Assembly: GCA_016748015.1 (NCBI GenBank)
Contig: JAAOMT010000029.1
Span: forward strand, 112,896-176,895
Reading direction: 5' to 3'
From: Geosiphon pyriformis uo1
Taxonomy: Eukaryota; Fungi; Glomeromycota
DNA length: 64,000 bases
Below, piece by piece: positions 7,011 through 56,000 of this stretch (its first letter is position 1; each line of letters opens with the position of its first letter). The notes beneath the pieces are model-generated. The model was not told the origin of the DNA. It did not search any database and saw only the letters and a list, made by a program, of their open reading frames with translations. The position numbers and the translations under genes were made by a program.

Positions 7011-9250
7011 ATTATGCTAAATAAGAAACTTAAATAAAGGACGCTAAGAAATAATATGAATATTATTATACTATCTCAAAATATGTTGAAAATAGAAAAA
7101 AATCTTTTTTGATCTAGGAAGGATAGCCATATTCTCGCTCTAATCTAAGAAATTCATGAAATTAAAATTAAGCTAGATTTGATTATTATTAAAAAAGTTC
7201 AAGAAAAGTTTGTATCATTGAAATAATTTACAAAAAAGCCCTAAATTTTAAACATGTTTATAAGAATTGATAAAAAAGAATTTACATTCAATAATGTTTT
7301 TTCTTTATATATACTGTAAACTTTAATTTTAGAAAAAAATGAAACTACTGCAATCTTGTAATTACTTAAAACTAACAATCGTAAACCATCAGATAAGAAT
7401 TTAATAAATTTCCGTGAATATCAGTGGCAAAATATTGAGTAACAAAAAAAATATATATTCCAAAATGTCAAAGCAACTAAAAAAAAACAAAATATAGCAT
7501 ATATTGTATTATTATTTTAAAATAAAATTCTAATTCTAATTAAACAATTTAATTAAATTTTAAAATGTGTCTTTATATCAAATTATTAAAGAAACATACT
7601 TAACATTTATGAATTAATTTAAACAAAAATTTTTCTTAACAAGTCAATTCAAATATTAGTTAAGATGCTATTTAAAAATGTAACTATTTTGAATAAATGT
7701 TTTTAAAGAATAGCCAATAATAAAATAGTTATTGTTTCACAGTAAATGCAAACAGCGCACTTTTTACACGTGACTAGCCACCATACCAATCAACTTCTAA
7801 TTGGTCATTATTGTACAATCGTCATGTGCATACATTTATAGAGAGTATTCTAATATACTTGGAACTCAGAATCATTTGCACATGCAGAATATAGAGAGTG
7901 TGCATTTAGCTTTAAGCCCCAAACTTGGGACCAGACTATAGTGTGCATATAGAGAGAGTATGTACTTATAGTTATGAATTAAAATAACAGACTAACAAGT
8001 GATGAATTAAAGATGGTTCATGAATATTGTATGAATGATGTTTCAGGTAGCAAATTTTAAATTTAAGTTTATCCAAAACCTTTTTCTTAATTAATACAAA
8101 TTACAAAAATAGAAAAAAAAGTTAAGTTAATTATTACCTTAAGCTTTCAAGTAATGATTAATATTTTTCTCCAGAAGAGTCAATGATCAGATAAAAGATT
8201 CTCTCTAAAAATAGATGATTAAGCTAATAACTAAATAGCAAATCCAAACTATGACTATATAAAGTATTTAGGTGAGAAACATGTAAGATGATCAATTTCT
8301 CATTGTGTTCTACCAATTTCGAAAGATTAGAATTAGGTGATTTGCCAAAAATTTATAATATTCTAATCTTGATCTAACTTTTGTCCCAATAAATTAAAAT
8401 GGTTTTGACTAAAATGAAGTATTTTCATTAGATAAAAAATATAATATATAGTAATAGAGATAGATCGCTGCTTCAATTTATTACATATTCGTTAGGAAAA
8501 CTTTGAGAGCTACAATGAAATTATTTCCCCACATCTTTTATACACATAAGCCCATTTTATTAAAGTCTTCCTGTTTTGTCAATCTGAAAATTTTTTGATT
8601 TGATATATAAAGAACTTTGGCAATGAAGGCGATAGATTAATGATAAAGTAATAATACAACGGTAACTTTGAAGCTGCGAAAGGAGAAAAGATTCAAGGAA
8701 CTTAGATCAGAGGAATTAAGACTTTCGTTTCATAATTTTAGGAGAAATTCGCCTGTAATGATAAACAAAATATCTTTGGTATCTGATTTAGTAATATTAA
8801 TGGAAACTTTCCATTTACAATATTTGTTTGATATTGCCTCCCAGAAAGCTATAGTCGTCCAATGGATTTATTTTTTCGTATACAGCCATGGTAAAAAGTA
8901 TTCACCATAGACGTTCCATTTTCTTCTTAGATCCTCATGGCAGAGTTTAATTCGCTAAAGATGTACGCATTATTATATTCCAACTCTTTTTTTATGGGTC
9001 AGCCCAATTTGTTAGGATCTTTGAAAATACGAATTCTGGGTTTTTGCTTTTTATTCATTAAGTATATGGAGAATTTTAATCAATAAACTTTGCTTTCATT
9101 TCTTGCCTTACTCATAAATGCCACGATCACAAGTAGTGGTCTCCATGTCGCAAAGAAAAAAGTCAAATGTTTTGGTTTCTAAAAGTTAAGTAAACTTTTA
9201 TTAGTTTGCTTTTAAGCTTCCAATTTTGAAAATGAGACAAAATTAATCTC

Positions 9251-11241
9251 TCAAAACTTGCCCCATGAAGAAAATTCTCTCAGGGTTTTATTGGAAGACT
9301 CATTTAGATTTTCTGGTTCTTCAGTTATGACCGAGGCAAACTTTGTTAGTTTCTCCTCTTTCTCGATTACTGGCAAAAATGGCATCTGTTCCAATTCATT
9401 TAGAATTTCATCCATTGTTGGTCTCCTTTCAGGATCAAAATCCCAACATCGCGAATATAGCTGATGATAGGCGATGGGCGTCCCGATTATTGGAGTCTCT
9501 CGTTTACCGTTGCAAATTGAAAAAATTAAGGAATCGTTTGATTTTGGGAAAGGCTTTCAAATGAAAATTAAGATCTTTAATAAAGCGCTATCAATTATTT
9601 TATCTCTGCAGCAAAAAAAATTAGTTGAAAAATACTCACAGCTCTGCCAGCCGAGATTTCCCACATAATCACACCAAAACTGACCAATAGAATTATTGGC
9701 TTGATATTGTAAATCGCATATCCAAGTACAATTGAGTGACAGTAGCATTTGCATTGAAATTTAAGACAAACCTGTATATGTCAGAACGGGTATCATAAGG
9801 GGAAGGATGATCAGTCAGCCGCTCTAAATTGAGAAAATGAGATTTCATTCACCAAAAAAAGAAAACCACTTTACCAATCAAGAAGGTTCTAAAACTTACC
9901 AGGAGGTACATAAGCCAAGATTCCAGTAACAGATGAATGAAGTGATAAATCATCAGCTCCTGAAATTTTCTTTGAAAGTCCAAAATCAGTAATTAATGGT
10001 TTCCCGTGGTGCATGAGTATGTTTTTAGAGTGAAGGTCCCGGTGAACAATATTTTCATCATGAATGTATGCCAATCCATTAGCGATTTCATAGGCAAGTC
10101 CTTTCTTTGCTTCCCAGGTCAAGGAAAGAAAGTTTTTCTTCAAATAACCACGCAAGTTCCCGCCATCAGCATATTGCATCACCATCATGTATTCTTTTGT
10201 GTTTGGATCTTAGTAGTGAAAGAAATTGCAATTCAAGTTAAATAAAATTCGGAAATTTTTTCATGAATTAAAGGATTTCAATTCAAATATCAAATTAACA
10301 CCTTGGGATAAACCATAAAACGTGACCTTTAAAATGAAAAATCGAAGGAATCTTGTTTAGTCAAAAATAAAAATTCCCAAAGTTCATATTTGACAATTTT
10401 CTCACCACTCGATTGTCGTCTTTAACTTTCATTGAGAGTTTCAACTGAATATTAAAAGAATTTTAGGATTAAAGGTATAGTTGAAATCTCATTTATAAAG
10501 AGGTATCAAAAATAATAAATATTAGCAAACCTCACGAACAAATTCTTCGTATTTGCCTTCAACATTAGATACGATACTTCTGTCAAGCCGTTTTAATGCC
10601 ACTTGTCTTCGACGCCAAACAGCACGATGTATCACACCGAAGCCACCTTTGGTAACGTACTTGATATCACTGAAGTGCTTATACTCTATAAATTTCACTA
10701 GCTCTTCTTTAATAGCAGCTTCTAACCATGTAATATCTTTTCCTCCTTGGTAGTGGTGAAAATTTTCATCATCATATTGTGTAGTTGTAATCTTTTCATC
10801 TATTTTTCTTGATAGAGGAGTAACTGATGCGTTTTTTATGGGTTTTTCTTTTATTTTCTTTGGAGTGAATAGTGTTCGTGAATTAAATGATACTAATGTC
10901 TTTTCCGAGTTTCTTGATGAATCTTGATCAAAATCAATGCGTTCTAGGTCAATCACCTCGTTCAAATTTGCACAAGCTTGATCTAGTCGTTCTTCCAAAA
11001 GCCGAAAATTCTTTTCAAACTTGGATGCCTGTAGCAATTTATTTACGAAATTGCATTCTGAGTATTTTCCAATTGCCGCTTTACTTTCCTCAAGAACCAC
11101 TCCCAGGGTCCCTAACGCTATTCCATAACCTGCTTTTTTTATCTTTTCGGGATCATTTTCTAATTCTTGAAATAAATCCTTTGTTGATTCAAGAATATTT
11201 TGAATCCTCTCTAGAAATTGTTTAGCCTCAATTGTAGTCAT
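9251..11241 (-). CDS. Tyrosine-kinase-like (TKL) protein kinase with N-terminal MLKL-type helical-bundle domain (~492 aa)
   Basis: Exons 11241-10531, 10444-10406, 10326-10302, 10208-9900, 9823-9772, 9679-9640, 9553-9251. Kinase motifs: KGGFG, VALK, FVRE, HRDLHSKN, DFG, PPE, SDIYSFGVIMWE, CWDFDPERRP. The first ~100 aa match the MLKL N-terminal helix pattern. Confidence 0.9.
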
Positions 11242-12310
11242 TTCTTAAATCTGAAAAAAGTCTAAAGAGTAAAAATTGTACTAAGTTTCAAAAATTTAAT
11301 AATTGCCAGCAATTATAGCTGGGCAAATTTTTAACTAACCTGAAAGAACGCAACAAGAAAGATTCAACATCTGAAATGACATCAGGGATTTACTTTCTAA
11401 TTTCCTTTTCATTCCGATCTGTCGTGATAGCAGATAGATAATACAGGTGAAGTTCGTATTCGAGGCTGCATCATAGCCATATCGCATAATGTAAAGACGG
11501 TAATAAAATCGTCATACTTTCGCTTTTACTTGAAGTTTTGTTTTATAGCAAAAGTATATACTTCAAGTGTAAGTTAACTGCTGGCATATATAGTATACTT
11601 GAAAATTTAACTTTTAGAAATTCCTTTTGCCTTTTTAAATGTATAAATAATTAAATAAATAAAAAATAAAAAATATTTATTGCTAAGCATGTCTACATAA
11701 AAGTTTCCAAGGTTTAAATAATTTATTCATGACAACAATATTCAATAATATTTATTCTAATAATTAAAGTGATTTATACCAAATATTTTATTGTAGTAAA
11801 TTGATTTTAAAAAAAAATTATTTCCAAGGATAAATTGAGTCTGAATTAATCCTAAAATGATCATCCCTTAATATTTGACTTTTAACTATAGAAATAAAAA
11901 AAATTTGGGTTCTACAAATTTAAATATATCCTAAATCCGTTACTTTTCTAAGATTGTGAACCCATATGAATTAGTTTTTTGGACTTTATAGATTTCCCTG
12001 TATTAATTAGGAAATTATGTAATATTGTGTATGCAATTTGATTTTTTATACAAAATTGTTCAATACCAATATAGATTTTTGAATCAAAATATATCATAGT
12101 AAGTTATTTTTAAAAGAGATTCAATTGGCACCAAACATTTCGAAAGTCCAATAATTCATATTGTTTTTCTTTTATATATTTAAATTTGACTTTTTACAAT
12201 GGTTTTTTCTCTTTGATTATAAAAACTACTTTAACCTAGTTCATTCAACTTGCATGCCGCAAAAGGATTTATTATCGGTTAATTTCATAAATTTCAAACT
12301 TGTTTGTTCA

Positions 12311-12317
12311 TAATAAA

Positions 12318-12400
<83 letters not shown>

Positions 12401-12410
12401 TAATAATAAT
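12311..12410. repeat. (AAT)n microsatellite
   Basis: Seen directly; it produces the poly-Y and poly-I pseudo-ORFs. Confidence 0.95.
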
Positions 12411-14193
12411 GAGAGACGTTAATTTTTTTTTTGTAATAATTTGGACTTCTTTGGCATCCATAAAATTTCATTTTCCGGATGAAGTTTCTTAAAAATTTTT
12501 TAGTAAAAGGGAAATTAAAAATTAAAAATAGGTATTATATAGTGTATATAGAAAGCACTTGTTTTTAAGTTAATGGTTTGGCCATCTAGATAATATATTC
12601 TTATTTATTACATAAATAATTTCTTTAAACAATTTCAGGCTAAAATTTGACTCTGGTTTGTGAGTTAAATATATAAATAGTAAAAAAGTCAAAAGTTCCG
12701 ACATTTTGATTGGAAAACTTAAATAGAAAAGGGTTCTCTAGCACTAATTAGAGCAAAAATCAAATCATCATGAAATTTTTTTTTAGCATTAATTCCAAAT
12801 AAAGAAATTAATAAATATCAATTGATGTCAGAATTCCGAGTTATCAAAAGGTAAGGAAAAAGGGGAAGAAATTCAGCCTTTTTAGTTTTACGAGATATTT
12901 TTAGAATAACTTAAATCTTTATCGCTATTAAAAGAAGCAGATTGTATACGCGTGGAACAAATTGTTCTTTGGCATCGTAAATAATAATAAAATAAGCAAA
13001 TTCAATCACTTTAAAAATTGTAATCCTTCTATAATCAGGCTGATGAAACTTCATTCGGGTATTTCCGAAATTGGGATTATTTGTGAAACAAACCTCCTTT
13101 TAAAAGTGTAAATATAAATTATTTCATTTAGGTTACCCAATTAGGGCAGAATTAGGTTTGATCTCAAAAATTTCCTTGGTAGCAAGATTTATAAATTATA
13201 ATCAGCTAGGACACCAGAGAGCTGTAGCAAGTTCTATGCATGGAAAGTATTTCCTAAAACTTATTAGCTGAAAACGCATGTAATTGAACAGAAAGTTTGA
13301 AAATCTTGGTTTTTTTAAGTGAATGAATAAATTAGCTGCACTTTCCAATTAAAAGCTCTCTTTGCATATGTCAAGTCATAATGACAGCAGTAGTCAGAAA
13401 ACTGATAATGCACATTGAACTGTCTTCATTTTTTTGGTGTTTTCATAATAAATTTTTTTTTATTGTTAATAAAATTTCTTTTTTTATTATTACATTTAGA
13501 TCAATTCTAATAACTTTAAAATTTTCGGCGGTTTTTTCTACTAATAATAAAAAGTATCAGGTTTGAATTTGACTCGGGTGTTTTCTTTGCTTTTTGAAGT
13601 CTTTTTATTGAGATTTACGAAAGATTATACATTTTAGCAGGGGATTTATTAAGATCTGTTCGAATATTATGAATTTATTAGTAAATGGTGAATACGATAG
13701 ATCCATGTTTTATTATAAGATAATGGTGAATATTTTGTCAATCCTGAAAAAAAAAGAATTTCATTATTTTGCATTGATCTAGATTTTTATTATTTTTATT
13801 ATTATTTTTTGCAATTAGTTAATAATTTTTAGCCTCAAAGAGTCTTAAAATAACATTTTTAATTTTGTGATTTAATTTTCCTTAACAATTTATGAATATA
13901 TTGAAAAAAATAATTTTACTCAAATCAATTTCGAAAGTATTCAAATTGGACAAAAAAAGATGCTTGACGAAAAGTGAACCGCGGGTGATTTACAAAAATT
14001 AAAAGCTCTTGAACAATCATGATTCTATTCTTTGGGTGTCTTTTTGAGCGACTTATTGATAATAAATTAGTCATTGATATCCATTACCGATAAGATAAAC
14101 TTCTTTTTTAACACATTCTTTAGGTAGTCCTTAATAATATTGAGTTTTGAATTTGTTACTTTAAATATTAATGAAAATAAACAAAAATTTCTC

Positions 14194-14250
<57 letters not shown>
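14194..14250. repeat. (AAT)n microsatellite
   Basis: Seen directly. Confidence 0.95.
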
Positions 14251-14251
<1 letters not shown>

Positions 14252-16214
14252 TTTTGAAGAAGAAAATTTTCTTTGCTTATGAAAAAAAAAATAAAAAAAA
14301 TAAAAAACAAGAGAACAATGTAAAAGGGTTGGTATATTCTATTAATAATGTTACATAAACTTCGAGGTTTGAATTCCCCTGCTTTCTATTGCTCTTTTTT
14401 GTATTTTGCTCAAAAAATAATGTGAGTAAAAAAAATGCACAACCCCCCGCATATAACATTTGCAATTTCTATTTTGAATATTTTCACTTTCTTTCTGCAT
14501 TAATTTTTCATTTTGCTTCCTCCGGGGGAGATTTTTTACTTTTTTGACCAAACTGTTGTGAAAAACCTTATCGATTACCATATATGTCAAGTGAAAAGAA
14601 AAATCATTTCCTGATTTAAAAGATTCTGATTAATGATGGTGTATTTGAGAAATAAAAGAAGGATTTGATGGTCAGTTTTTGATTCTAAAATATCTGCACT
14701 CCTGTATCAAAGAATTTCAATTGTTTGGAAATTTTTTTTTTTTTGGTGTGTTACCTGCACAAATTGTTGCACCACGATAATATGTCAAAACTGGCATCGA
14801 AAACATTCTGATTACGTTAGTGAAAATTCCTTTGGAAAACCCCCACAAAATTATTAAAGCTGCAGGTTACGTAAGTAAAAAGTTTGTTATTATTTTTTAA
14901 GTTTTCACAGGAAAAAATTCCCTTTGTTCGTAATTAAATTAGAAATGTGGAAACACGAGTGTATAAAACAATTCATTTTACAGAGTGTCTGGATCATTCG
15001 AACAATTGAATACCTTATTTCAAGAATTTTAAGTTTCTACAGTATTATGAATATTCGGGATATTTATATTCTATAATTTTGAAATGTACGTGAGGAATAT
15101 TTCAAAAAAGTTCGCTGCATTGTGGAAAATACAATGGAATAAAAGGCGAAGGAAATTCGAGACACTTCATTAGCACTTTATGAGATTACATCAGTAAATA
15201 ATTATGACATTTTGAGGTTTTACCTCTTTAAATTCCCGCTAAACATTCTTTGACAAAAAATTTTCAACGTGTGGAAAAAGCATAATAATGTAACTGATGA
15301 ATGACCCGAACAACAAAAATATCTTTTAAAGTTTTCCGATTTGGGAAGACTTCGTTTTCTATTTATCGATCTCCCGTTTTTTCGTCGTGATCTATGTTCC
15401 AAACGTTTTCATTTTTTTTTCAATAGAGTGAGCAAAAATAAAAATGTTTTTTTTTTTTTTTTATTCAATTTGTTTAATTATTGGAATTAATATTTCTCCT
15501 TTATTAAAAGGTACGTCTCTCGAATGGCGGAATTTTGAGATGAAAAGTTACAGAGAAAATTTATGGAGACTTTGGAGCACAAAAAACTTTGCTATATTTT
15601 TTTTTCGTTAAATTAAAAGAACAATCGAATATAACCCGATTACATCCGTTTAAATCGTAGATTCCTGAACTTAACTTCTGTGTACCTCACAAATTAAGTA
15701 AATGCTGTGGGTAAAATCCCAAAATTGTTATATATAATATGGAACATGACTTTTGGTTGTCAATATAAGCTTTATAAATTGGCTAAAATACTTTATTATG
15801 AAATAAAATAAAATGCAAGCATTTGGGTGCGTAAAAATTGAAAAACTTTTTTATTTTTTTAATTTTATTTTTAATTTTTTTTATTTTTGAGTTGAATATA
15901 AAATCTATGAATATATCATGAGTTTTACGAATTTTTTCAAATATGACAACAATCTAAAATTATAAATTTCACATGATTTTCTCTTGAATCTCCTCAATAG
16001 GCGTGTATTATATTGAAACTTTGGTTTTTTAAAGTGTTTTGATATATATAAACTATTCAAAAATTTAATTGATTTAACGATTTAATGAAAAAAAATTTAC
16101 AAATATTTTACTTATAATGCCTACCTAGTGTAGCAAATTTTAAATATAAAAAAGTATTCAAGTCTTTGATCCAATTTTGTATCCTCTTATAAAATTTTAA
16201 ACTACCTACTAAGT

Positions 16215-30732: not shown

Positions 30733-33700
30733 ATGTCTGTACAGCATAACCGTATACCTACTGTGAGCATTGTAAAGGAGGGTAGTCATTTAACCGGCCG
30801 TTACCCAGTAGGAACTAGTATCGGTTGGTGCGAAAATGATGGTGCTCATGAAACTACCACGCTTAGTAAATTTACCCCACAACACTCATTGAAACTTCCA
30901 AGACAAAAAGCTTTCGATTCTCTTGAATATCTATGGAATCTGAAAGAAGGAGAGCTCCCTAGTAATGCCACTATCGAAACCTGGCTTCATGACCTGCACG
31001 AAGCCTCAAAAATTGATACAAGACGCAGAAGGTTGTCCGGTGATGGGGAACGTTTGTTAAAGGATTTTAGGTTACTCTTACGCGTTTTACGTGACGTTTT
31101 ATTCGAAAAGAATTCAGATGAAAAGATTCAACATTTTGTTCGTATTGTGACAAAGGAGAGCAAGCCAGCCGTCTCAGGTGAGTAAAGTTCCATTCGTTTT
31201 TTTGCACATCATCATCATCATCATTAATCCTAGAATATTTATTAGAGGATATCAATAAAGGTGTAGCGAAAGGTACTGAAAAAGCTCCCAAGGTAGAACA
31301 ACGGAGCCATGAAATAAAGGATGAAGTTAAAAGAGGTAAATGATAAATAAAATTCACTTCTGAATTTAATTAACTCTAAACAAATCTAAGTAATACCAAA
31401 AAAAAAAACAACTATAGGATATGAATCAATGCTTATCGTGGCTCAACTCCTAACTACAAATCAGGAATTTAGGGACCTTTTACATGATCTCGTTGTTATT
31501 TTTCGTGATATGTTTGGAGATGCTGCTCTTAAGATTGGTGAATTGGCAAGACCATCTGAAGAAGAGCGTAGACGAGCCTTTGATGGTTATACAGACCGTG
31601 AAGAGGGAAGGGAGGGGTTTAGTGAAGATCGTAGACATTCACACTTCGGACATGGGAATATTCACGCGGGAAACCAATTTTCTGAGCAGCATTCAAGTCC
31701 TCCTCCCATTTCAACTGGGCAACAAATTCCATCAGTGCAGGATTCCGAACAGTCGGACAATATATTTGTAAAGGGTCGACAATATTTGAAGGACCAATTT
31801 ACCGGAAGTCAACACGAAGCTTTTGATCGCACATCTGGTTACGTAACCGAAAAAGTTCCGCCAAAGACTCGTCAAACCTTAATCTACAGACTAAAAACGG
31901 CTTTATATCAAGTTCAAGCAGATGAAAGCTATCAAGAAGCTATTAATTATTTGTTTGAGCTGTCTGCTATATGGGCCAATCAGGCTGCTGGGCTAAGTTC
32001 AGAAGCAGGATCAGCCGCAAAAAACTATACTAGAGAGCCTGCTTATGTTCAAGCTCAATCCTTGTTGAAGGTTTGATTTTTAAAGAAAATTTATTCCACA
32101 AATTTCAATCCCCCAACTAAATTTATTTATTTATTAGCAAATCATTGAAGCTTTTGCTCAAAATAAGTCGCTCGATCCACTCTTTAATGCGATGAATATC
32201 TTTTTCGGTCATGTCCGTCAAGATCCTGCACTTCAACATTACTTTGAGGAGGTTAGTTTGTATAAAAATGACCTTACTTGAAACAAATACCATTTTATAT
32301 TCCTTTTTAACATGCCCACTTTAGGTGAACACATATTTAAAAAGACTTCTCCAAGAGCCTGGTTACTTTGACAATGAAGATAGCAACTACCGTGGGAATG
32401 AATTGATCCAACGAGGGCAAAATTTGTTAGGCGAAAAATATAGACCGGATATGAATCGGTTGAACAATGAAGCTATGGTTTTTCTTAACGCTTTGGTCAC
32501 GGATCCAGTGACGAAACGATTCGGGACAAGTATCAAAGCATTTGGAAAAGACTTGTTGTTGGATGAGTATGTTGATTCGTTATATAATCAAGCCTTTGCC
32601 AATTTATTCAACTAATATCATTTAAATCCGTAGAAATAACAGTCCAACCTTCAAAATGCACCTTTTCCAAGATTTTCGATCAACATTTTTTCCAATCATT
32701 TTCCAACATATTCATCAAATCCCTATCCCACGTATTGAGTATACAGATGAACATTATGATGCTGTTATAGAAAACATGGTTCTGACAAGCGATACTTTCT
32801 TCCCAAATCGCATCAATATTGACGTGAGTAGTAAATCTGGATCGTCCTCGTTACAAAAATGAATAATAAACTCGTATTCACACTTTTTCTTGATTGAATA
32901 CAGGTGAGAAACCATATTACCATCAGCCCTGTCCAAGAAAATGCCGATAAAAATCAGCATTGGTTATATCTTGATGTGCAAGGTCTACATGCAGAGGCTA
33001 AGGATGTCGCGTTTCAATTTAAGAAGAAAACCGGATTCTTGAAACCTATGGAATATGGATCTGCTAAAGTCCAGGTAAATAATTGATCTATGACTTGCAT
33101 CACGTCTGGTGTTATTTCTCGTACCAATTGACTAATTAAGGGATACTTTTTTGCCATTAAATAATACAGGTTGGGCAGCCTGGTAGGGGGGGAATATCCT
33201 TTAACGCTACTTTAACCTTGGGGGAAGATGATGACCAGATGTATAGAGTTAGCGCTGTTCATGTTAACGTTAAGAATCTGAAGGTAATCATTTCCGGGAA
33301 AAAACATGGGTAAGCTATTTTAGTTTTTGAGAGTTACTTTATGTGTGAATTTTTCCTTCAGAAACATCTTAACATTGATTTTTCAAAATATTCTAGGCTT
33401 CTGCTTAAATTATTCAAGCCAACAATCGTCACCTTGATCACAAAGCAAATTGAGCAAAGTCTCGAATCCACAATCCGTGAAACACTCGATTCTACGGCAG
33501 TAGGCTTGTCTAATTTCGTGTCTATGATAAAGACAAAGGCCTGGGACAATCGCCATGATATGGAGGATGATGAATATACTCCTTATCGTGGAAAATCGAG
33601 ACGTAGCTCAACCAAATCATTTCTTGGTGGTTTCTTTAGGCGTAATTTTTCAAAAACTGATAGACGCGGTTCCTTGAGGCATGAGGATCATCAGAAAGGC

Positions 33701-33898
33701 AAAATGAGAGATGATGAAAAAATGTTCGTCGAGCCTTATTCAATAGGCGATAAAAATCATGGATTTGGAAGCGGTGAAGGGGAAGCAAGCCGAACTACTA
33801 ATTTACCCCAATCTGATAAACATCTAAATGGGATACATAAAGTCGCGTATGGCCTTGGCGAACATCCACAGTCTCCGGCTGTAACGGTTAAGCCTTAG
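30733..33898 (+). CDS. HAM1-like (DUF5923/DUF4449) protein with BPI/TULIP-like C-terminal region (~848 aa)
   Basis: Exons 30733-31177, 31246-31335, 31418-32070, 32138-32251, 32325-32566, 32634-32823, 32904-33074, 33170-33309, 33397-33898. Motifs: GELPSNA, LSGDGERLLKD, EKNSDEKIQHF, LLTTNQEFRDLLHD, IPIPRIEYTD, ENMVLTSDTFFPN, FQFKKKTGF, KLFKP. Confidence 0.85.
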
Positions 33899-37744: not shown

Positions 37745-40700
37745 ATGACAACACCAACAAAAGGGGTCCAAGAAGCTGTGGACAACATACATTTAGACGC
37801 TCCTAACAATCAATTAAGCTTCAATTCCGAAAAAAATCAATCTAAACTCTCCTCGGAAACGCCGATAGACTTCTCTGTAACCGATTTACTTTCACAGGAA
37901 GTAAATTTGAACGGCAAAAGCGAACCTGATAATGGTTTCTCGGAAAAGGAAAAAGATAGCAAGAAACAAAAAGAGAAAGATGACCTAGCAAAAGTTGGTT
38001 TCTTTGAACTATTTCGATTTGCTACACCGGTTGAGAGATTATTCATGTTCCTTGGCTCAATATCTGCCGCAGCTAATGGTTCAGCTTTACCAATAATGAC
38101 CATTGTCTTCTCTGCTTTCATAAAAGCATTTTATAAGTTCGTTAGAGATTATAAAGATGATGGTCAAAAAGCAAAAGATGAATTGACCGACAGTGTGAAC
38201 AAAAATTCTGTCTGGTTTATTATAATGGGAGTTAGTGTCTTTGTACTCAGTTATCTACAGATGACATTGTGGATGATTGCTGGGGAAAGGCAAGCCAAGG
38301 TAAAGACATTTGAAATTTTTAATCAATTTAAATTCAGGGATAACAATGTTAAGCCTATCAAATCAATTATAGCGTATACGAATATTATATTATTCTTCTA
38401 TTCTACGGCAAGATATTGCGTGGTTCGATTCAATTTCTACCGGAGATTTAACAACGCGTATTTCCGGAGATGTAACACTGCTGCAAGAAGGTATATCTGA
38501 AAAAATTGGTTTCATTATACAATACGTCACCACATTTATTGCTGGTTTCGTCATTGCTTTCACTAAAGGTAATTTCTTTCAATTATTTTTTCATTTTCAT
38601 AATGATGAATCAAATTTCTCAAATTCTTTATCTAATTTTCAGGATGGAAGCTCTCCCTCGTTCTCACTTCGGTCATTCCTTTGTTAGTCGCTGCTGGGGG
38701 TGCAATGGCTTATGGTATTTCGAATTCAGCTGTGGATGGTCAAGGTACCTTTTCGAAACTTTACTTGACAAATTTCAAATCATTTTGATATGTGACAAAT
38801 TTTTGAAACTACTTTGAATTTCTGAAAGATGCTTATGGTGCAGCTGGCGCAGTAGCAGAGCAAGTTTTTGGTGGAATCAGGACGGTGGTCGCGTTTGCTG
38901 GTGAAAGGAGGGAAATTGTTCGATATAAGGAGAAAGTAATGATTTTTTTTATTCTAATAGAAACCTTAGATTTGATCGAATTGAATTTTTTCTCACCAAA
39001 TTTTTTTTATTCAAAATGTACAGCTTCAAATTGCATATAAGGTCGGAGTAAAGAAAGCCTTAATTAGTGGTATTGGAATGGGGGCTATTATGGGAATTTT
39101 ATTCTCAACTTATGGGCTTGCTTTCTGGTATGGTGCCAAGCTTGTTGTTAATGGGGAACTAACTGGCGACCAAGTTTTAAACGTCTTTTTTGCTATTATC
39201 ATTGGTGGTATGTATGAATTTCGTCCTTTTTCAATTGTCAAAAAGTGAATCTTTAATTTTTTAAATAACTTTGAGTTTGCCGTAATTTTTATTTTCAAGC
39301 ATTCTCACTTGGTAACGCATCACCAAATTTCTCTTCGGTGGGCAACGCTTTGGGTGCTGCGGCTAAATTATTTGCTATGATCGATCGTGTTCCTCCGATT
39401 GATTCTGCATCAGAGCAAGGCAAAATTCTCGTAAAATCTGATGTCCGTGGTCAAATCGAATTTAAAAACATCAATTTCCACTATCCACAACGTCCTGATG
39501 TTCCAATTTTGAAAAATTTTAATTTGACAATCGAAGCTGGACAAACCGTTGCACTAGTTGGAAGCTCTGGGAGTGGAAAATCAACAATCATCAGTTTACT
39601 GGAACGTTTTTACGACCCAATCAGTGGATCTGTGTCACTTGATGGAGTCGATCTCAAAAACGTTAATATTCAATCACTCAGGACACAAATTGGTCTTGTG
39701 GGCCAAGAACCTGTACTCTTCCCTGAAAGTATTGCACAAAATATTAAATGGGGTGGAATATCGGACGGTCCTGAACCAACTTTAGAAGAAGTTATCGAAG
39801 CTTCCAAGAAGGCTAATGCGCATGAATTTGTTATCGATTTACCAGATCAATATAATTCAATGGTTGGTGAAAAAGGAGCTCTTTTATCAGGTGGCCAGAA
39901 ACAAAGGTACATTTATAATCGGAATTTATTATCAATTTTTTTTTGCGTATGTTGGACTGACTTCATTGTAAATTATAGAATTGCAATAGCACGAGCTCTT
40001 ATTAAAGATCCCGCAATCCTTTTACTCGATGAAGCTACATCTGCTCTTGACACAGAATCCGAACGACTTGTTCAAGACGCTCTCGACGCAGCTTCCACGA
40101 ACCGAACCACCGTTGTGGTCGCTCATCGCTTGTCGACCATAAAAAATGCCGACAAAATCGTCGTAATGCAAAAAGGGGAAATTATGGAAATTGGTCGCCA
40201 TGATGAATTAATTGAGCGAGAAGGCATTTACTATGGGTTGGTCAAAGCTCAGGAACTCAAAACAAAACGCGACGCGCATGATGACAATGATAGCGATGAT
40301 GAAGAATCAATAAGCAGCCAAAACGGTGAAACCATTATAGAAATGGATGAAAAAAAGAAGCAATTTTTGCGGCGTATGTCAACAAAAGCCTCGACAGTTA
40401 AATCTAACGAGGAAATAATAGCTGATGACTATGAACAAAAATCAAAAGAAAAATTACTTCTGATTCGTGTGTTCAAAATGAATTTACCAGAATGGCCAAT
40501 CATTATATTTGGTATTTTGGGGGCCGCCGTCAATGGTGCTATTATGCCATTATTCTCACTGGTCTTTTCCACAATTTTGCAAATATTCTCTAAAACAGAC
40601 GAGTAAGCAAGAAAATATGCTTTCCTCTCTTTCCCGTTTAATATGCTCAATCCTGATTTACCATTTGTATTTTAGCTTACCCCAGATGCGAAAGGATGCA

Positions 40701-42505
40701 AATTTCTGGGCAGCAATGTTTGTTGTGTTGGCTGGTGTTGCTTTAGTTGCCAATTTCTTGCAAATGGGATTATTCTCAATAAGGTAAACTTCTTTTGATT
40801 TCAACAAATTAAGATTATCCTATCTTAATTGCCAATAATTTTATTTATTTAACTAAGTGGTGAACGGTTGACAAAACGTGTACGTGCTCTAACCTTCGAA
40901 GCAATAATCAGACAAGAAATCGCCTTTTTTGATGAAGAAAAAAATAGTACGGGAGCGCTGACTTCAAAACTTGCAACTGATGCATCAAAGGTTGAAGGTT
41001 TAACGGGAGGGTAAGATTTTCAGACAATATATTTTTATATTTAGATAATTTAAATACAAAAACTAAAAAGATTATACTCAATTTAGCATAATGGGATCGA
41101 TTATCTCATTATTCAGCAACACTGTCACTGGATTGGTGAGTATAAACGTTCATCGGGGGAACTTGTATTATTTTTACAATACTGAGCCTTTTCTTTTTAA
41201 AATAAAAAGGTAATTGCTTTCGTAATTGGTTGGAAATTAGCAGCAGTCGTCTTAGCATCATCTCCGGCAATCGTAGCCTCTGGCCTTTTGCAAATGAAGG
41301 CTTTGGCCGGTTATGGTGCATCGACGCGCAAAGCCTATGAACAATCCGGAGGAATTGTACAACAATCCGTTTCCAATATGCGCACAATTTCCGCTTTAAC
41401 TCGTGAAGGAACATTCAAAAGAATGTACGAAGAATCACTGGAAAAACCACACAAAATGACCCTCAAAGGAAGTATTTACTCTTCAATTGGCTTTGGACTC
41501 TCTCAAGGACTTCTTTTTTTTGTTTGGACACTAGCGTTTTGGTACGGAAGTCGCTTACTCGGGAACCAGGAATACACATTGGAGCAAATGTTGCGTGTGC
41601 TATTCGCTATCATTTTCACTGCCATGTCTTTGGGTCAACTGAGTGCTTTCGCTCCCAACACAGCAAAGGCAAAAATATCAGCTATCTCCATATTTGAAAT
41701 TCTTGATCGTAGATCTAAGATTGACACGACTGAAAACGAAGGAAAAGAACGTCCAACGCCAGTCACAGGGGAGGTCAGTATTTCCTTAGCAAAATTCAAC
41801 TACCCTGCCCGTCCCGAAACGAAAATTCTTCGGGGTCTAGACATGAGAGTAAAAAGTGGGAAAACTGTTGCTTTGGTTGGTGGTTCTGGTTCTGGAAAGT
41901 CGACAGTAGTATCATTATTACTCCGGTATTACGATGTTTTATCGGGATCGGTTAAAGCTGAAGGAGTAGATGTAAGAGATTGGAATTTGGAATATCTTCG
42001 TTCAAATATGGCTATCGTAGGTCAAGAACCTGTGTTATTTGATTTGACAATTGGTGAAAATATTGCATATGGCAAGGAGGGGTGTACACAAAAGGAAATC
42101 GAAGCAGCAGCAAAGGATGCAAATATTCACAATTTTATTTCGAGCCTACCACTTGGTTATAACACACCTGTCGGGGAAAAGGGTACACAGCTTAGTGGTG
42201 GACAAAAACAACGTGTCGCTATTGCTCGTGCACTTATTCGAAATCCCAAACTTTTACTTCTTGACGAGGCAACATCAGCTCTTGACTCGGAATCCGAAAA
42301 AGTCGTACAAAACGCATTGGATCTTGCTGCAAAAGGCCGAACAACTGTTACAATCGCCCATCGGCTCTCCACTATTCAAAACGCAGACCTTATTCTAGTG
42401 GTGAAAAAGGGAAAAGTGATCGAGCAAGGGAAACATTTAGATTTAATTCAACAACATGGCTTGTATTATGAATTAGTTAATAAGCAGACATTGACTCATC
42501 AATAA
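37745..42505 (+). CDS. mdr1: Full-size ABCB/MDR1 (P-glycoprotein-like) ABC transporter (~1326 aa)
   Basis: Exons 37745-38299, 38373-38568, 38643-38744, 38829-38935, 39024-39207, 39300-39906, 39979-40602, 40676-40783, 40858-41010, 41087-41135, 41210-42505. TMD-NBD-TMD-NBD layout with Walker A GSSGSGKS/GGSGSGKS, LSGGQKQR twice and LLLDEATSALD twice. Confidence 0.96.
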
Positions 42506-53099: not shown

Positions 53100-56000
53100 T
53101 TTACTTTTTTATGAAAAGGATTAATTTTTAAAATTCCAACCATTTGCTTAAATCAAATTTGTTAATTTTAATGAACTAAAAATAATTTATACAAGTTATT
53201 ATAAAAATTCAAAATTCGTAGTATAATCAAAACTATTTTCTATCAAAATCAACAAAAGTTTCATTTATATTATAAACAATCCTTGTATTTTTAATAACAT
53301 ATATTTAAAGATTTACAAATTATGTTTAAATAAAATAGTATACAAATAATTAATTTGAAAATTTATTTAAAACACTATTTTTAAAAATGTAAAATTATTA
53401 TTTTTTATAAATAAACTCAAATTTTCCACTATTTTTTGTTAAATAATGTATAATTGACTAATGAAAACTTGTATACATGTATAAATTTACTACAATTATG
53501 ATAAACCAAAATTATTTTATAGTTTTTTATTTTCTATTTTCATATATTAAATATTTGATTAAATTAAACAAAAAACAATAAAGTAAACAAAAGCAAAAAT
53601 AAATAAATTTAAACAATAATAACTGGTGTTGAATAAATTAAAGAATTTTGCTCATAAGAAATAAATTATACATATAAATTAACTATTTAAATGCTTAAAT
53701 ATAAAAAATCATGGAAGTTGTGAATTATTTCAGTCATCTTACAAATCCAGTTAGTAAGAAATGTTAAACTACTTGAATATAAAATGAGAACATGGTTCCA
53801 ATTCTTTAAGCAAATTGACACCATATACAAAAATATAGTCTAAATTAGTTTTATCTTCTGTTGTTTCTTAAACTTAATTATTCTAGTTCTTTTTGTTTTA
53901 TCTGTTTTACAAACTTTAATAGTTTAATCTGCTTTTTATTATCGTATTTGTAGTTTTTATGTCTTTGAAGCAAATCAATCTTGCTTAAGTTCTTTAAACT
54001 CTTTAGCACATTTAGCAAAAGAATAATCATTTGAAAAGTCTTTTGTATATTTTAATATGCTTAAATTACTCTATCTTAAATTAATGTACCCAAACTTAAA
54101 ATTAACTTATCTAAAAAGTTCAATAATAATTGTTCAAAGTTTTAAGATTTTTCTTAATTAAACCTAACTTATTATTCAGATAATGTTAGCCAAATAGCGC
54201 TTATTAGCACACTTTCTATAAGTATTGTACTTACATGGTTTGTATTTTTGGTTAAGACTTTTTTTCTACTATTTAAAAATTTTAAAAAATTTAAAATAAT
54301 TGTTGATAATACAAATAAGACTTAAGTTTTAACAACATTTCTGCCAAGAAAATTGCTTTATAGTAATTTATTTGTAATTTAAATTGAAAAAAAACTTTGA
54401 TCAATTAGTTCTATTTTGGTCTTTATAATAATCTTGTCAAAATTCCATAATACTTAGTAAACTATTGGCAATATAATATATTATAATAATTGATTATTTA
54501 AATATTGTAAAGAATAAAATTTTTAAAAATGTACTGTTAATTCTGTTTTTCTCTATTTTTTAATTTGTTAACTAACATTCATGCAATGTAATAATTAATG
54601 CTAATCAATACAATTTATTTTAAGTTTTTTATTAAAATTAAAAAATACTATTATTAAATTGATAATTTTTATTTGTATTATAAAGATTTTGATTAATAAA
54701 ATTGTTACAGTTTTATTAAAAAACAATTAATATAAGATGTAGTAAAAGTTATATGTTTAAATATTCCAGTTTTTATTTCAAGTACTTAAATTTTGTTAAG
54801 TTTAAGATTTAGTTTTAAGTCCAAATATTGTTATTAATTTAAAACAAAATTATAATTCTTAAGTATTTTGTTTTTTAATAAAAATCTTTGTTTAATATCC
54901 AGTTTTGTCTTTAGTTTTAATTATATTGTTAAGATTTAGATTTTTTAATTAAGTTTATTAATAAACAATCTATTATTTTTAAAAATATTAGCTAAAAAAC
55001 TCATAATTATTTTTTATAATAACAACATTGAGAAAAACTTATTTTTAATATTATTAAAAGTTTATATTATGTTATTATTCTTAGATTATTTTGGTTATAA
55101 TTAAATAATCCAATAATTAACTAAAAAGTTTATAGAATTAAATTTGCCAAGTTTTTAAAAATAGTTAATATTCACTATTTTAAAAATTTTAATAAGTTTT
55201 TTTGATTATAGCTTTAATTATTTTATAAGCAATTCAAACCAATTTAAAATTTACATCCTGTAATATATATATTAATAAAAAATAAAAAATTAAAGTATTT
55301 TATAAATTTTAAGTAGTTACTTAAATATTAAAAATATGTTAATAAATTTAATAAAAAAAGAATTAATTTATTTTAAAATATTACTAGTATAATTTTTTTA
55401 TCAATTTAAAAAAAATAGCTCTATTTAGGCTAATTTATAATATTTCTAAACTAAAATTCAAAATTTTTTATTGAAGAATTTCAAAAATGAATCAAATATA
55501 ACATTTTAAATATATTATAACTATTTTAAATATTTAATAATACTATTTAGTCTAACAAATATGTTTGCTGTTTTTTAATATTTAAGAAATAATATATTTA
55601 AAACTATTTAGATTAATTTATTATTTATTATTTTATTCAAAAATTATAAAACTATAAAAAATAAATATTTTTAGTTAAAATTATTTTTAATTAAAATATT
55701 AATTTATTTTGTAATTTAAAAACATTTTTTTAGTTTTTTAATACTAAATTTTTTTATCTTTAATTTTATATTCTTTATTTAATAATTATATTAAATACAT
55801 ATTACACATTGTAAGAACACATATAATTATTAATAACTATAATATAATTTTTTTTTAAAAAAGTATTATATTAATTAAAGTAATAAACTATTTTTAATTT
55901 TTATATTTATTATTGTATTTGTTTTGTTTTTAATTTTTATATATTTAGTCTTATTATATATTCTTTTGATTAAAATTATATAAATATTTAAATTAAATGC

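Follow-up and report, generated by a model that had tools for sequence, protein, structure and literature searches.

A spliced gene on the minus strand of a 64,000-nucleotide stretch of the Geosiphon pyriformis genome (contig JAAOMT010000029.1, positions 112,896 to 176,895; hereafter the window) encodes a protein in which part of the helical N-terminal domain of MLKL, the Pfam family MLKL_N, precedes a kinase. The gene lies at window positions 11241-9251, and its public counterpart is KAG9306767.1 (P0001; 'hypothetical protein G9A89_005667 [Geosiphon pyriformis]', 512 residues). KAG9306767.1 is probably a signalling kinase, a Geosiphon-specific paralog of the MLKL-like kinases of Glomeromycotina, whose helical-bundle remnant has a regulatory role or mediates interactions. 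The evidence comes from profile matches of the helical domain, from the motifs of the kinase, and from a comparison with the other members of the family in the same genome. Exons were searched individually, while analyses of the whole protein were carried out on the public sequence.

Sequence homology of the helical domain to MLKL

Exon 1 matches MLKL_N (PF22215) over residues 10-101 with 37.1 bits (E 2.7e-9; curated cut-off 27), and the score remains above the cut-off for residues 1-110 (39.4 bits) and for the full-length protein (35.7 bits). A phmmer search with residues 1-110 against 1.84 billion representative sequences returned five proteins: the query itself, two relatives whose MLKL_N domain is full, namely P0002 (E 2e-10) and the Geosiphon paralog KAG9295780.1 (P0003; E 2e-8), and two marginal matches. 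A profile built from six related N-terminal domains, the query included, recovers, among PDB entries, the N-terminal domains of human and mouse MLKL (2msv, 4btf, 6zvo, 6ux8 and 6lk5) with E-values of 3e-13 to 3e-12, the next unrelated match standing at E 0.09. As a single sequence, residues 1-110 gave nothing significant against the PDB (best matches synaptobrevin and XaxA, E 0.25-0.37), and a word-index homolog search with exon 1 gave no match in the 130-415 residue length band. The Pfam families HeLo and Helo_like_N were not listed for exon 1 even at E-values up to 10, and SesA reached just E 0.14. Searching the ESM Atlas by features brought up clusters of MLKL_N, MCAfunc and RPW8 from plants as the nearest ones (0.91-0.92), a weak signal that is consistent with homology. 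Judged by these profile matches, the N-terminal domain of KAG9306767.1 is homologous to that of MLKL.

An earlier reading of the DNA, made from its letters without database searches (the sequence-only reading), had aligned this segment by eye and without gaps to human MLKL. The profile alignment reproduces the same register, and the human segment used there is that of 2msv_A. The same reading had called the region an MLKL-like helical bundle. Homology to MLKL_N is borne out by Pfam and by the family profile; however, the bundle is not a complete four-helix one, since the protein begins at the equivalent of alpha2.

Predicted structures are less specific. AlphaFold 2 models were built on shallow alignments of 4 and 6 sequences. 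The model from 6 sequences places helices at residues 3-29, 37-62 and 65-105 (pLDDT, the predicted local distance difference test, approximately 64-86), with a mean pLDDT of 73 and a predicted template modelling score of 0.62. Residues 106-168 have a pLDDT of 27-52 and contain one low-confidence helix at 109-123; a pre-kinase helix follows at 168-188. No brace helix between bundle and kinase is predicted with confidence. Foldseek found no match with E <= 0.001 for either model. With VIA-align, the first model matched the MLKL N-terminal domain (6ux8_A, Z 7.0) and AtMLKL3 (6ka4_A, Z 6.5) amid many generic helical matches, while for the better model MLKL lay outside the top 50 and the best match (Z 10.2) was to unrelated helical proteins. 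A comparison with MLKL by AlphaFold and Foldseek, which the sequence-only reading had proposed as a check, thus yields modelled helices whose fold matches are generic helical bundles. An N-terminus modelled as a generic coiled coil with no MLKL, RPW8 or HeLo match had been named there as evidence that would speak against the idea; the fold searches do point to a generic bundle, but at the level of sequence profiles the match to MLKL is clear. Because the fold searches return generic bundles, the claim of homology rests on sequence.

A kinase with complete catalytic motifs

The kinase carries a G-loop (TKGGFGV, residues 197-203), the VALK lysine K217 (codon 10593-10591), the alphaC glutamate E237, an HRDLHSKN catalytic loop with D316 (codon 10038-10036) and N321, and the DFG aspartate D333 (codon 9987-9985). 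The PPE glutamate E362, D376 and R436 are all present as well. As predicted from these motifs, the kinase is catalytically intact, and the VALK, alphaC, HRD and DFG residues that had been pointed out by eye are indeed K217, E237, D316 and D333.

The full-length protein scores 169 bits with Pfam PK_Tyr_Ser-Thr. Its nearest solved kinases belong to the TK and TKL groups (CTR1, TAK1, RIPK4, TNNI3K and MLK1), and the MLKL pseudokinase (6vbz) is matched at E 4e-26. In sequence, the kinase is best matched by an expanded group of 'kinase-like proteins' from Gigaspora, Rhizophagus and Diversispora, with which it shares 37-46% identity. A 'WLE...EY' stretch ahead of the kinase is similar in a Rhizophagus TKL kinase (P0007). 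Among the 120 kinase matches listed, MLKL_N occurs only in the query itself and in P0076, a protein described below. No Pfam match to Sel1 repeats was found in KAG9306767.1. By sequence similarity, its kinase belongs to the large TKL expansion of Glomeromycotina, whose genomes hold approximately 1500 Pkinase_Tyr and approximately 3400 Sel1 motifs (PMC9453076).

Absence of helix alpha1 and an acidic bundle core

The match to PF22215 spans profile positions 29-116 of 142, whereas the paralogs match from positions 4-9. In alignments, KAG9306767.1 sets in where the conserved alpha2 begins, marked by a K-x-x-C-x-x-L motif that is shared with human MLKL, and it has just 4 residues ahead of the alpha2 column, compared with 28-124 in the relatives. 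A search of the Geosiphon genome with the family profile found 20 MLKL_N-like loci, a lower bound, as are all paralog counts from this search. KAG9306767.1 starts at profile position 37 and the other 19 at positions 3-22, so that it alone among the 20 loci found lacks alpha1. The other 19 also have a hydrophobic N-terminal extension that KAG9306767.1 is without; the additional N-termini of the fungal relatives contain hydrophobic 19-mers with a Kyte-Doolittle hydropathy of 1.6-2.15. The core of the bundle carries a net charge of -6 in KAG9306767.1 versus +1 to +6 in the relatives.

A miscalled start codon, with alpha1 encoded by an upstream exon that escaped recognition and hence a full four-helix bundle, would explain the short N-terminus, and a possible splice acceptor (ttttttcag) does lie just 5' of the ATG. 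Such an exon is nevertheless unlikely because an in-frame TAA stands two codons 5' of the ATG (the remaining two frames likewise stop at once), because no trace of alpha1 is found upstream, because alpha1 and alpha2 lie in one continuous exon in the paralogs, and because the public annotation starts at the same ATG. In the 4.7 kb upstream, neither a listing of open reading frames (ORFs) nor tblastn with the N-termini of three paralogs revealed an alpha1-like segment, nothing falling below E 0.5. A miscalled start is accordingly the least probable of the explanations considered here, and a very improbable one.

Relatives in Geosiphon and other Glomeromycotina

In the closest paralog, KAG9295780.1 (710 residues; G000:C623:203576-207058), the MLKL_N domain is full and is accompanied by a kinase-like domain and Sel1 repeats. 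This paralog shares 33-34% identity with KAG9306767.1 in the helical domain, and the two proteins are collinear over residues 5-449 at 25% identity. Orthologs of KAG9295780.1, whose N-terminal domains are 61-88% identical, are present in Ambispora, Rhizophagus, Acaulospora, Racocetra, Gigaspora, Dentiscutata, Diversispora and Paraglomus. The G-loop is deleted in all 12 aligned members of this orthogroup. The HRD site reads HKY in ten of them and HKT in P0140, the stretch being missing in P0141; the DFG site reads NFR in 11 and SFR in P0126. Proteins of this type carry 66-124 additional N-terminal residues, alpha1 included. Their sequences indicate that the orthogroup is a conserved pseudokinase with a real MLKL layout. 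The type is found in all sampled orders of Glomeromycotina and comes closest, among fungal proteins, to the layout of animal MLKL; its conservation exceeds that usual for an immune gene. Sel1-bearing MLKL-family homologs have been noted as specific to Glomeromycotina (PMC8778642).

The further MLKL_N-like loci of Geosiphon number at least 19 (L007, L009-L017 and eight more places), and several of them are clustered, for example four on C642 and four on C387. In each of the other loci fetched, a kinase-like domain follows; most of these read HHD at the HRD site and, when that part could be recovered, NFG at the DFG site. L007 has NFH, and L015 combines HRD with NFG. Among the 12 loci fetched and checked, KAG9306767.1 alone keeps both HRD and DFG. 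Two of the MLKL_N-like loci contain in-frame stops and are decayed copies.

P0076 (L005:7692-9479) is an intronless single ORF on the 19-kb Logan contig SRR28211857_770167. Its MLKL_N domain is complete, the VAIK, HRD and DFG motifs of its kinase are intact, and it also has Sel1 repeats. This contig is gene-dense, has a guanine plus cytosine (GC) content of 0.36-0.41 and does not look fungal. P0076 adjoins an ORF of more than 2600 residues with a SecA_DEAD-like domain; its remaining neighbours have no Pfam match.

Functional interpretation

KAG9306767.1 would be a soluble Ser/Thr kinase of the TKL group, catalytically competent by its motifs, that carries alpha2 to alpha5 of the MLKL_N bundle. 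A remnant without the N-terminal helix is unlikely to permeabilise membranes by itself; mediating protein-protein interaction or autoregulation is its likelier role. It may dock onto the full-length MLKL-like pseudokinase paralogs and modify or compete with them. In HET-S and in plant coiled-coil (CC) domains, membrane targeting is attributed to the N-terminal helix (PMC12881547, PMC9815663). Because both this helix and the hydrophobic extension are absent and the core is acidic, autonomous membrane killing by KAG9306767.1 is unlikely.

The sequence-only reading had proposed a one-component executioner of the MLKL type, in which the protein's own kinase, for example by autophosphorylation, frees the helical domain to permeabilise membranes and kill the cell. 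The MLKL_N homology is real and the order of helical domain, linker and kinase is collinear with KAG9295780.1; moreover, Pm13 provides a precedent for an MLKL N-terminal domain joined to an active kinase in immunity with cell death (PMC10951266). However, the absence of alpha1 and of the hydrophobic segment is unique among the 20 loci found, the core charge is -6, no brace is predicted with confidence and the fold searches give just generic bundles. The step from MLKL-like domain to necroptosis-like executor therefore lacks support, and a role as executioner is improbable. About equally improbable is that KAG9306767.1 is the family's own activating kinase, a RIPK3 analogue born by duplication of an MLKL-like gene, or else a truncated antagonist, docking in either case onto a protein of the KAG9295780.1 type through its remnant. 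That idea starts from a contrast: most of the checked MLKL-like genes of Geosiphon combine a full bundle with a degenerate kinase, and this is the one checked copy with an active-looking kinase and without the first helix. The protein had also been thought possibly an ancestral MLKL-type module. Since no ortholog was found among the 1.84 billion representatives and the kinase most resembles ordinary TKL kinases of Glomeromycotina (40-46% identity, compared with 25% to the MLKL_N paralog), KAG9306767.1 does not appear to be ancestral.

Somewhat less improbable than these, yet still unlikely, is that the gene is a young, lineage-specific chimera or a 5'-truncated TKL gene, in which the helical remnant is neutral or which is decaying or not expressed. 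It forms a singleton cluster with no ortholog among the representatives searched, its helical domain is nearest to KAG9295780.1 (33-34% identity) while its kinase is nearest to generic TKL kinases (40-46%), Pkinase_Tyr and Sel1 counts are very large in Glomeromycotina (PMC9453076), and decayed copies of the family occur in the same genome. Against this stand seven or eight exons that are all open, with canonical splice sites and with complete kinase motifs, and a helical domain that scores above the Pfam cut-off and is folded by AlphaFold 2 into confident helices. The interpretation as a signalling kinase with a regulatory bundle remnant is preferred. Several points weigh against it: no ortholog by which to gauge selection on the remnant was found among the representatives searched; the AlphaFold 2 models are of moderate confidence (pLDDT 73, 6 sequences); no MLKL-like or NLR gene that might be a partner adjoins KAG9306767.1 among the larger ORFs of the window; and the requirement of alpha1 for killing is carried over to the MLKL_N family by analogy with HET-S and plant CC domains.

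The family shows that in early-diverging, plant-symbiotic fungi kinases are joined to domains that are true homologs, by sequence, of MLKL's killing domain. Within it, KAG9306767.1 is a natural variant, with a predicted active kinase and without the first helix, that could be used to dissect the family. Should the remnant indeed bind full-length MLKL-like pseudokinases, the two proteins would make a simple fungal pair in which to follow the evolution of kinase-controlled helical-bundle death proteins. KAG9306767.1 itself is deposited as a hypothetical protein; its architecture is detectable with Pfam and is of a previously described type.

Gene model and genomic neighbourhood

The window is AT-rich eukaryotic DNA with a GC content of approximately 0.29. 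Depending on the model, the gene has seven or eight exons (Table 1). The seven-exon reading of window positions 11241-9251 gives 1479 nucleotides and 492 residues, every intron being bounded by GT..AG, and each of the seven exon translations is found as a substring of KAG9306767.1. The sole difference between the models is that, close to the C-terminus, the public one adds a GC-AG intron (donor GCAAGT at 9261, acceptor TTTTAG at 9179), by which the final 3 residues are exchanged for a 23-residue tail. Exon 7 ends at 9262 in the public model, while reading straight through leads to a stop at 9253-9251.

Table 1. Domains and exons of the KAG9306767.1 gene, in window coordinates
Feature	Position	Strand	Evidence
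Partial MLKL_N helical domain, residues 1-105 (equivalents of alpha2, alpha3, short top helix, alpha5)	10927..11241	-	Pfam PF22215, phmmer, family profile, AlphaFold 2
Linker, residues 106-168, Ser/Thr/Lys-rich, predicted disordered	10738..10926	-	AlphaFold 2 pLDDT 27-52
Exon 1 remainder, residues 169-237: pre-kinase helix (ITWLEAAI...EY), G-loop, VALK, alphaC Glu237	10531..10737	-	Sequence motifs
Exon 1, complete	10531..11241	-	Open reading, GT..AG border
Exon 2, 13 residues, kinase N-lobe	10406..10444	-	GT..AG borders; identical to KAG9306767.1 residues 238-250
Exon 3, 25 nucleotides, kinase N-lobe	10302..10326	-	GT..AG borders; substring of KAG9306767.1
Exon 4: hinge, catalytic loop HRDLHSKN, DFG, activation segment	9900..10208	-	Pfam Pkinase E 3e-21, PK_Tyr_Ser-Thr E 7e-21
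Exon 5: end of PPE motif, subdomain IX Asp376	9772..9823	-	Substring of KAG9306767.1
Exon 6: helix F (FGVIMWEI)	9640..9679	-	Substring of KAG9306767.1
Exon 7: kinase C-lobe with Arg436, C-terminal tail	9251..9553	-	Pfam PK_Tyr_Ser-Thr profile positions 209-258
Exon 8, public model alone: 22-residue tail and stop	9108..9178	-	Equals KAG9306767.1 residues 491-512

The plus-strand neighbours are ordinary: a HAM1-like gene (HAM1_N, HAM1_C; window 31429-33898) and a full-size ABC transporter (ABC_membrane, two ABC_tran; window 37745-42505). When ten larger ORFs of the window were scanned with Pfam, neither an NLR nor a second kinase came up. A two-gene module suggested by context was considered and rejected, as the window's larger ORFs either belong to the HAM1-like and ABC-transporter genes or match no Pfam family. 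Upstream of the gene, long AT-rich simple repeats of the trinucleotide type at window 12241-12492 and 14140-14358 can be read in several frames as ORFs of poly-Y, poly-I and poly-N. The GC content falls to 0.136 at window 54001-56000.

Comparison with known systems

Like animal MLKL (2MSV, 4BTF, 6UX8), KAG9306767.1 has a homologous helical domain followed by a linker and a kinase fold of the TKL type. Unlike animal MLKL, it lacks alpha1 and a confidently predicted brace, has an acidic core, and keeps the full set of catalytic residues rather than being a pseudokinase. Executioners of the MLKL type, both animal MLKL and the plant AtMLKLs, which are of the pseudokinase type (bioRxiv 10.1101/681015), have degenerate kinase domains, whereas K217, E237, D316, N321 and D333 are all present in KAG9306767.1. 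Animal MLKL is paired with RIPK3; no RIPK3 or RHIM partner is known for KAG9306767.1, though the genome as a whole was not searched for RHIM-like motifs.

The orthogroup of KAG9295780.1 differs from KAG9306767.1 in having alpha1, a deleted G-loop, HKY and NFR motifs, and C-terminal Sel1 repeats. The Glomeromycotina TKL kinases resemble KAG9306767.1 in their HRDLHSKNI and SDIYSFGV motifs and in a similar pre-kinase helix; many of them bear Sel1 repeats, which KAG9306767.1 does not. The HeLo and HELL domains found in HET-S and HELLP belong to the same superfamily of MLKL-related helical bundles as the domain of KAG9306767.1, and some fungal HELL domains share a protein with a kinase or pseudokinase domain, according to a 2025 review (PMC12881547). 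Compared with HET-S and HELLP, KAG9306767.1 has neither an amyloid-forming C-terminal motif nor an N-terminal membrane helix. Fungal 'MLKL' proteins have also been cited from Basidiobolus (PMC11476962); no experiments on any fungal member were found in the literature searched.

NRG1C of Arabidopsis is an N-terminally truncated helper NLR of the RPW8 type that regulates its full-length neighbours (bioRxiv 10.1101/2021.01.27.428547). Like KAG9306767.1, it is a cell-death paralog without the N-terminal part of a HeLo/RPW8-type domain, an analogy of mechanism alone. It differs in being an NLR and not a kinase, and its regulatory role has been demonstrated experimentally, while that of KAG9306767.1 is a putative one.

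The combination of domains has a precedent in plants. Pm13 of wheat and Aegilops joins an MLKL N-terminal domain (MLKL_NTD) to a kinase with all key catalytic residues and acts in immunity with cell death, and 714 MLKL_NTD-kinase proteins of Poaceae and Arabidopsis were retrieved from InterPro in the same study (PMC10951266). Pm13-type proteins and KAG9306767.1 are alike in their N-terminal MLKL_NTD, partial in KAG9306767.1, and in a C-terminal kinase with all catalytic residues. Pm13 differs, however, in its complete predicted four-helix bundle, in its brace and in having a kinase of the plant RLK/Pelle LRR_8B group as opposed to a fungal TKL kinase. The fusion of an MLKL_NTD to a kinase may have arisen independently in Geosiphon and in plants. 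The architecture, which had seemed unusual from the sequence alone, is therefore already known in the form of MLKL_N with an active kinase, and KAG9306767.1 is an atypical addition to it.

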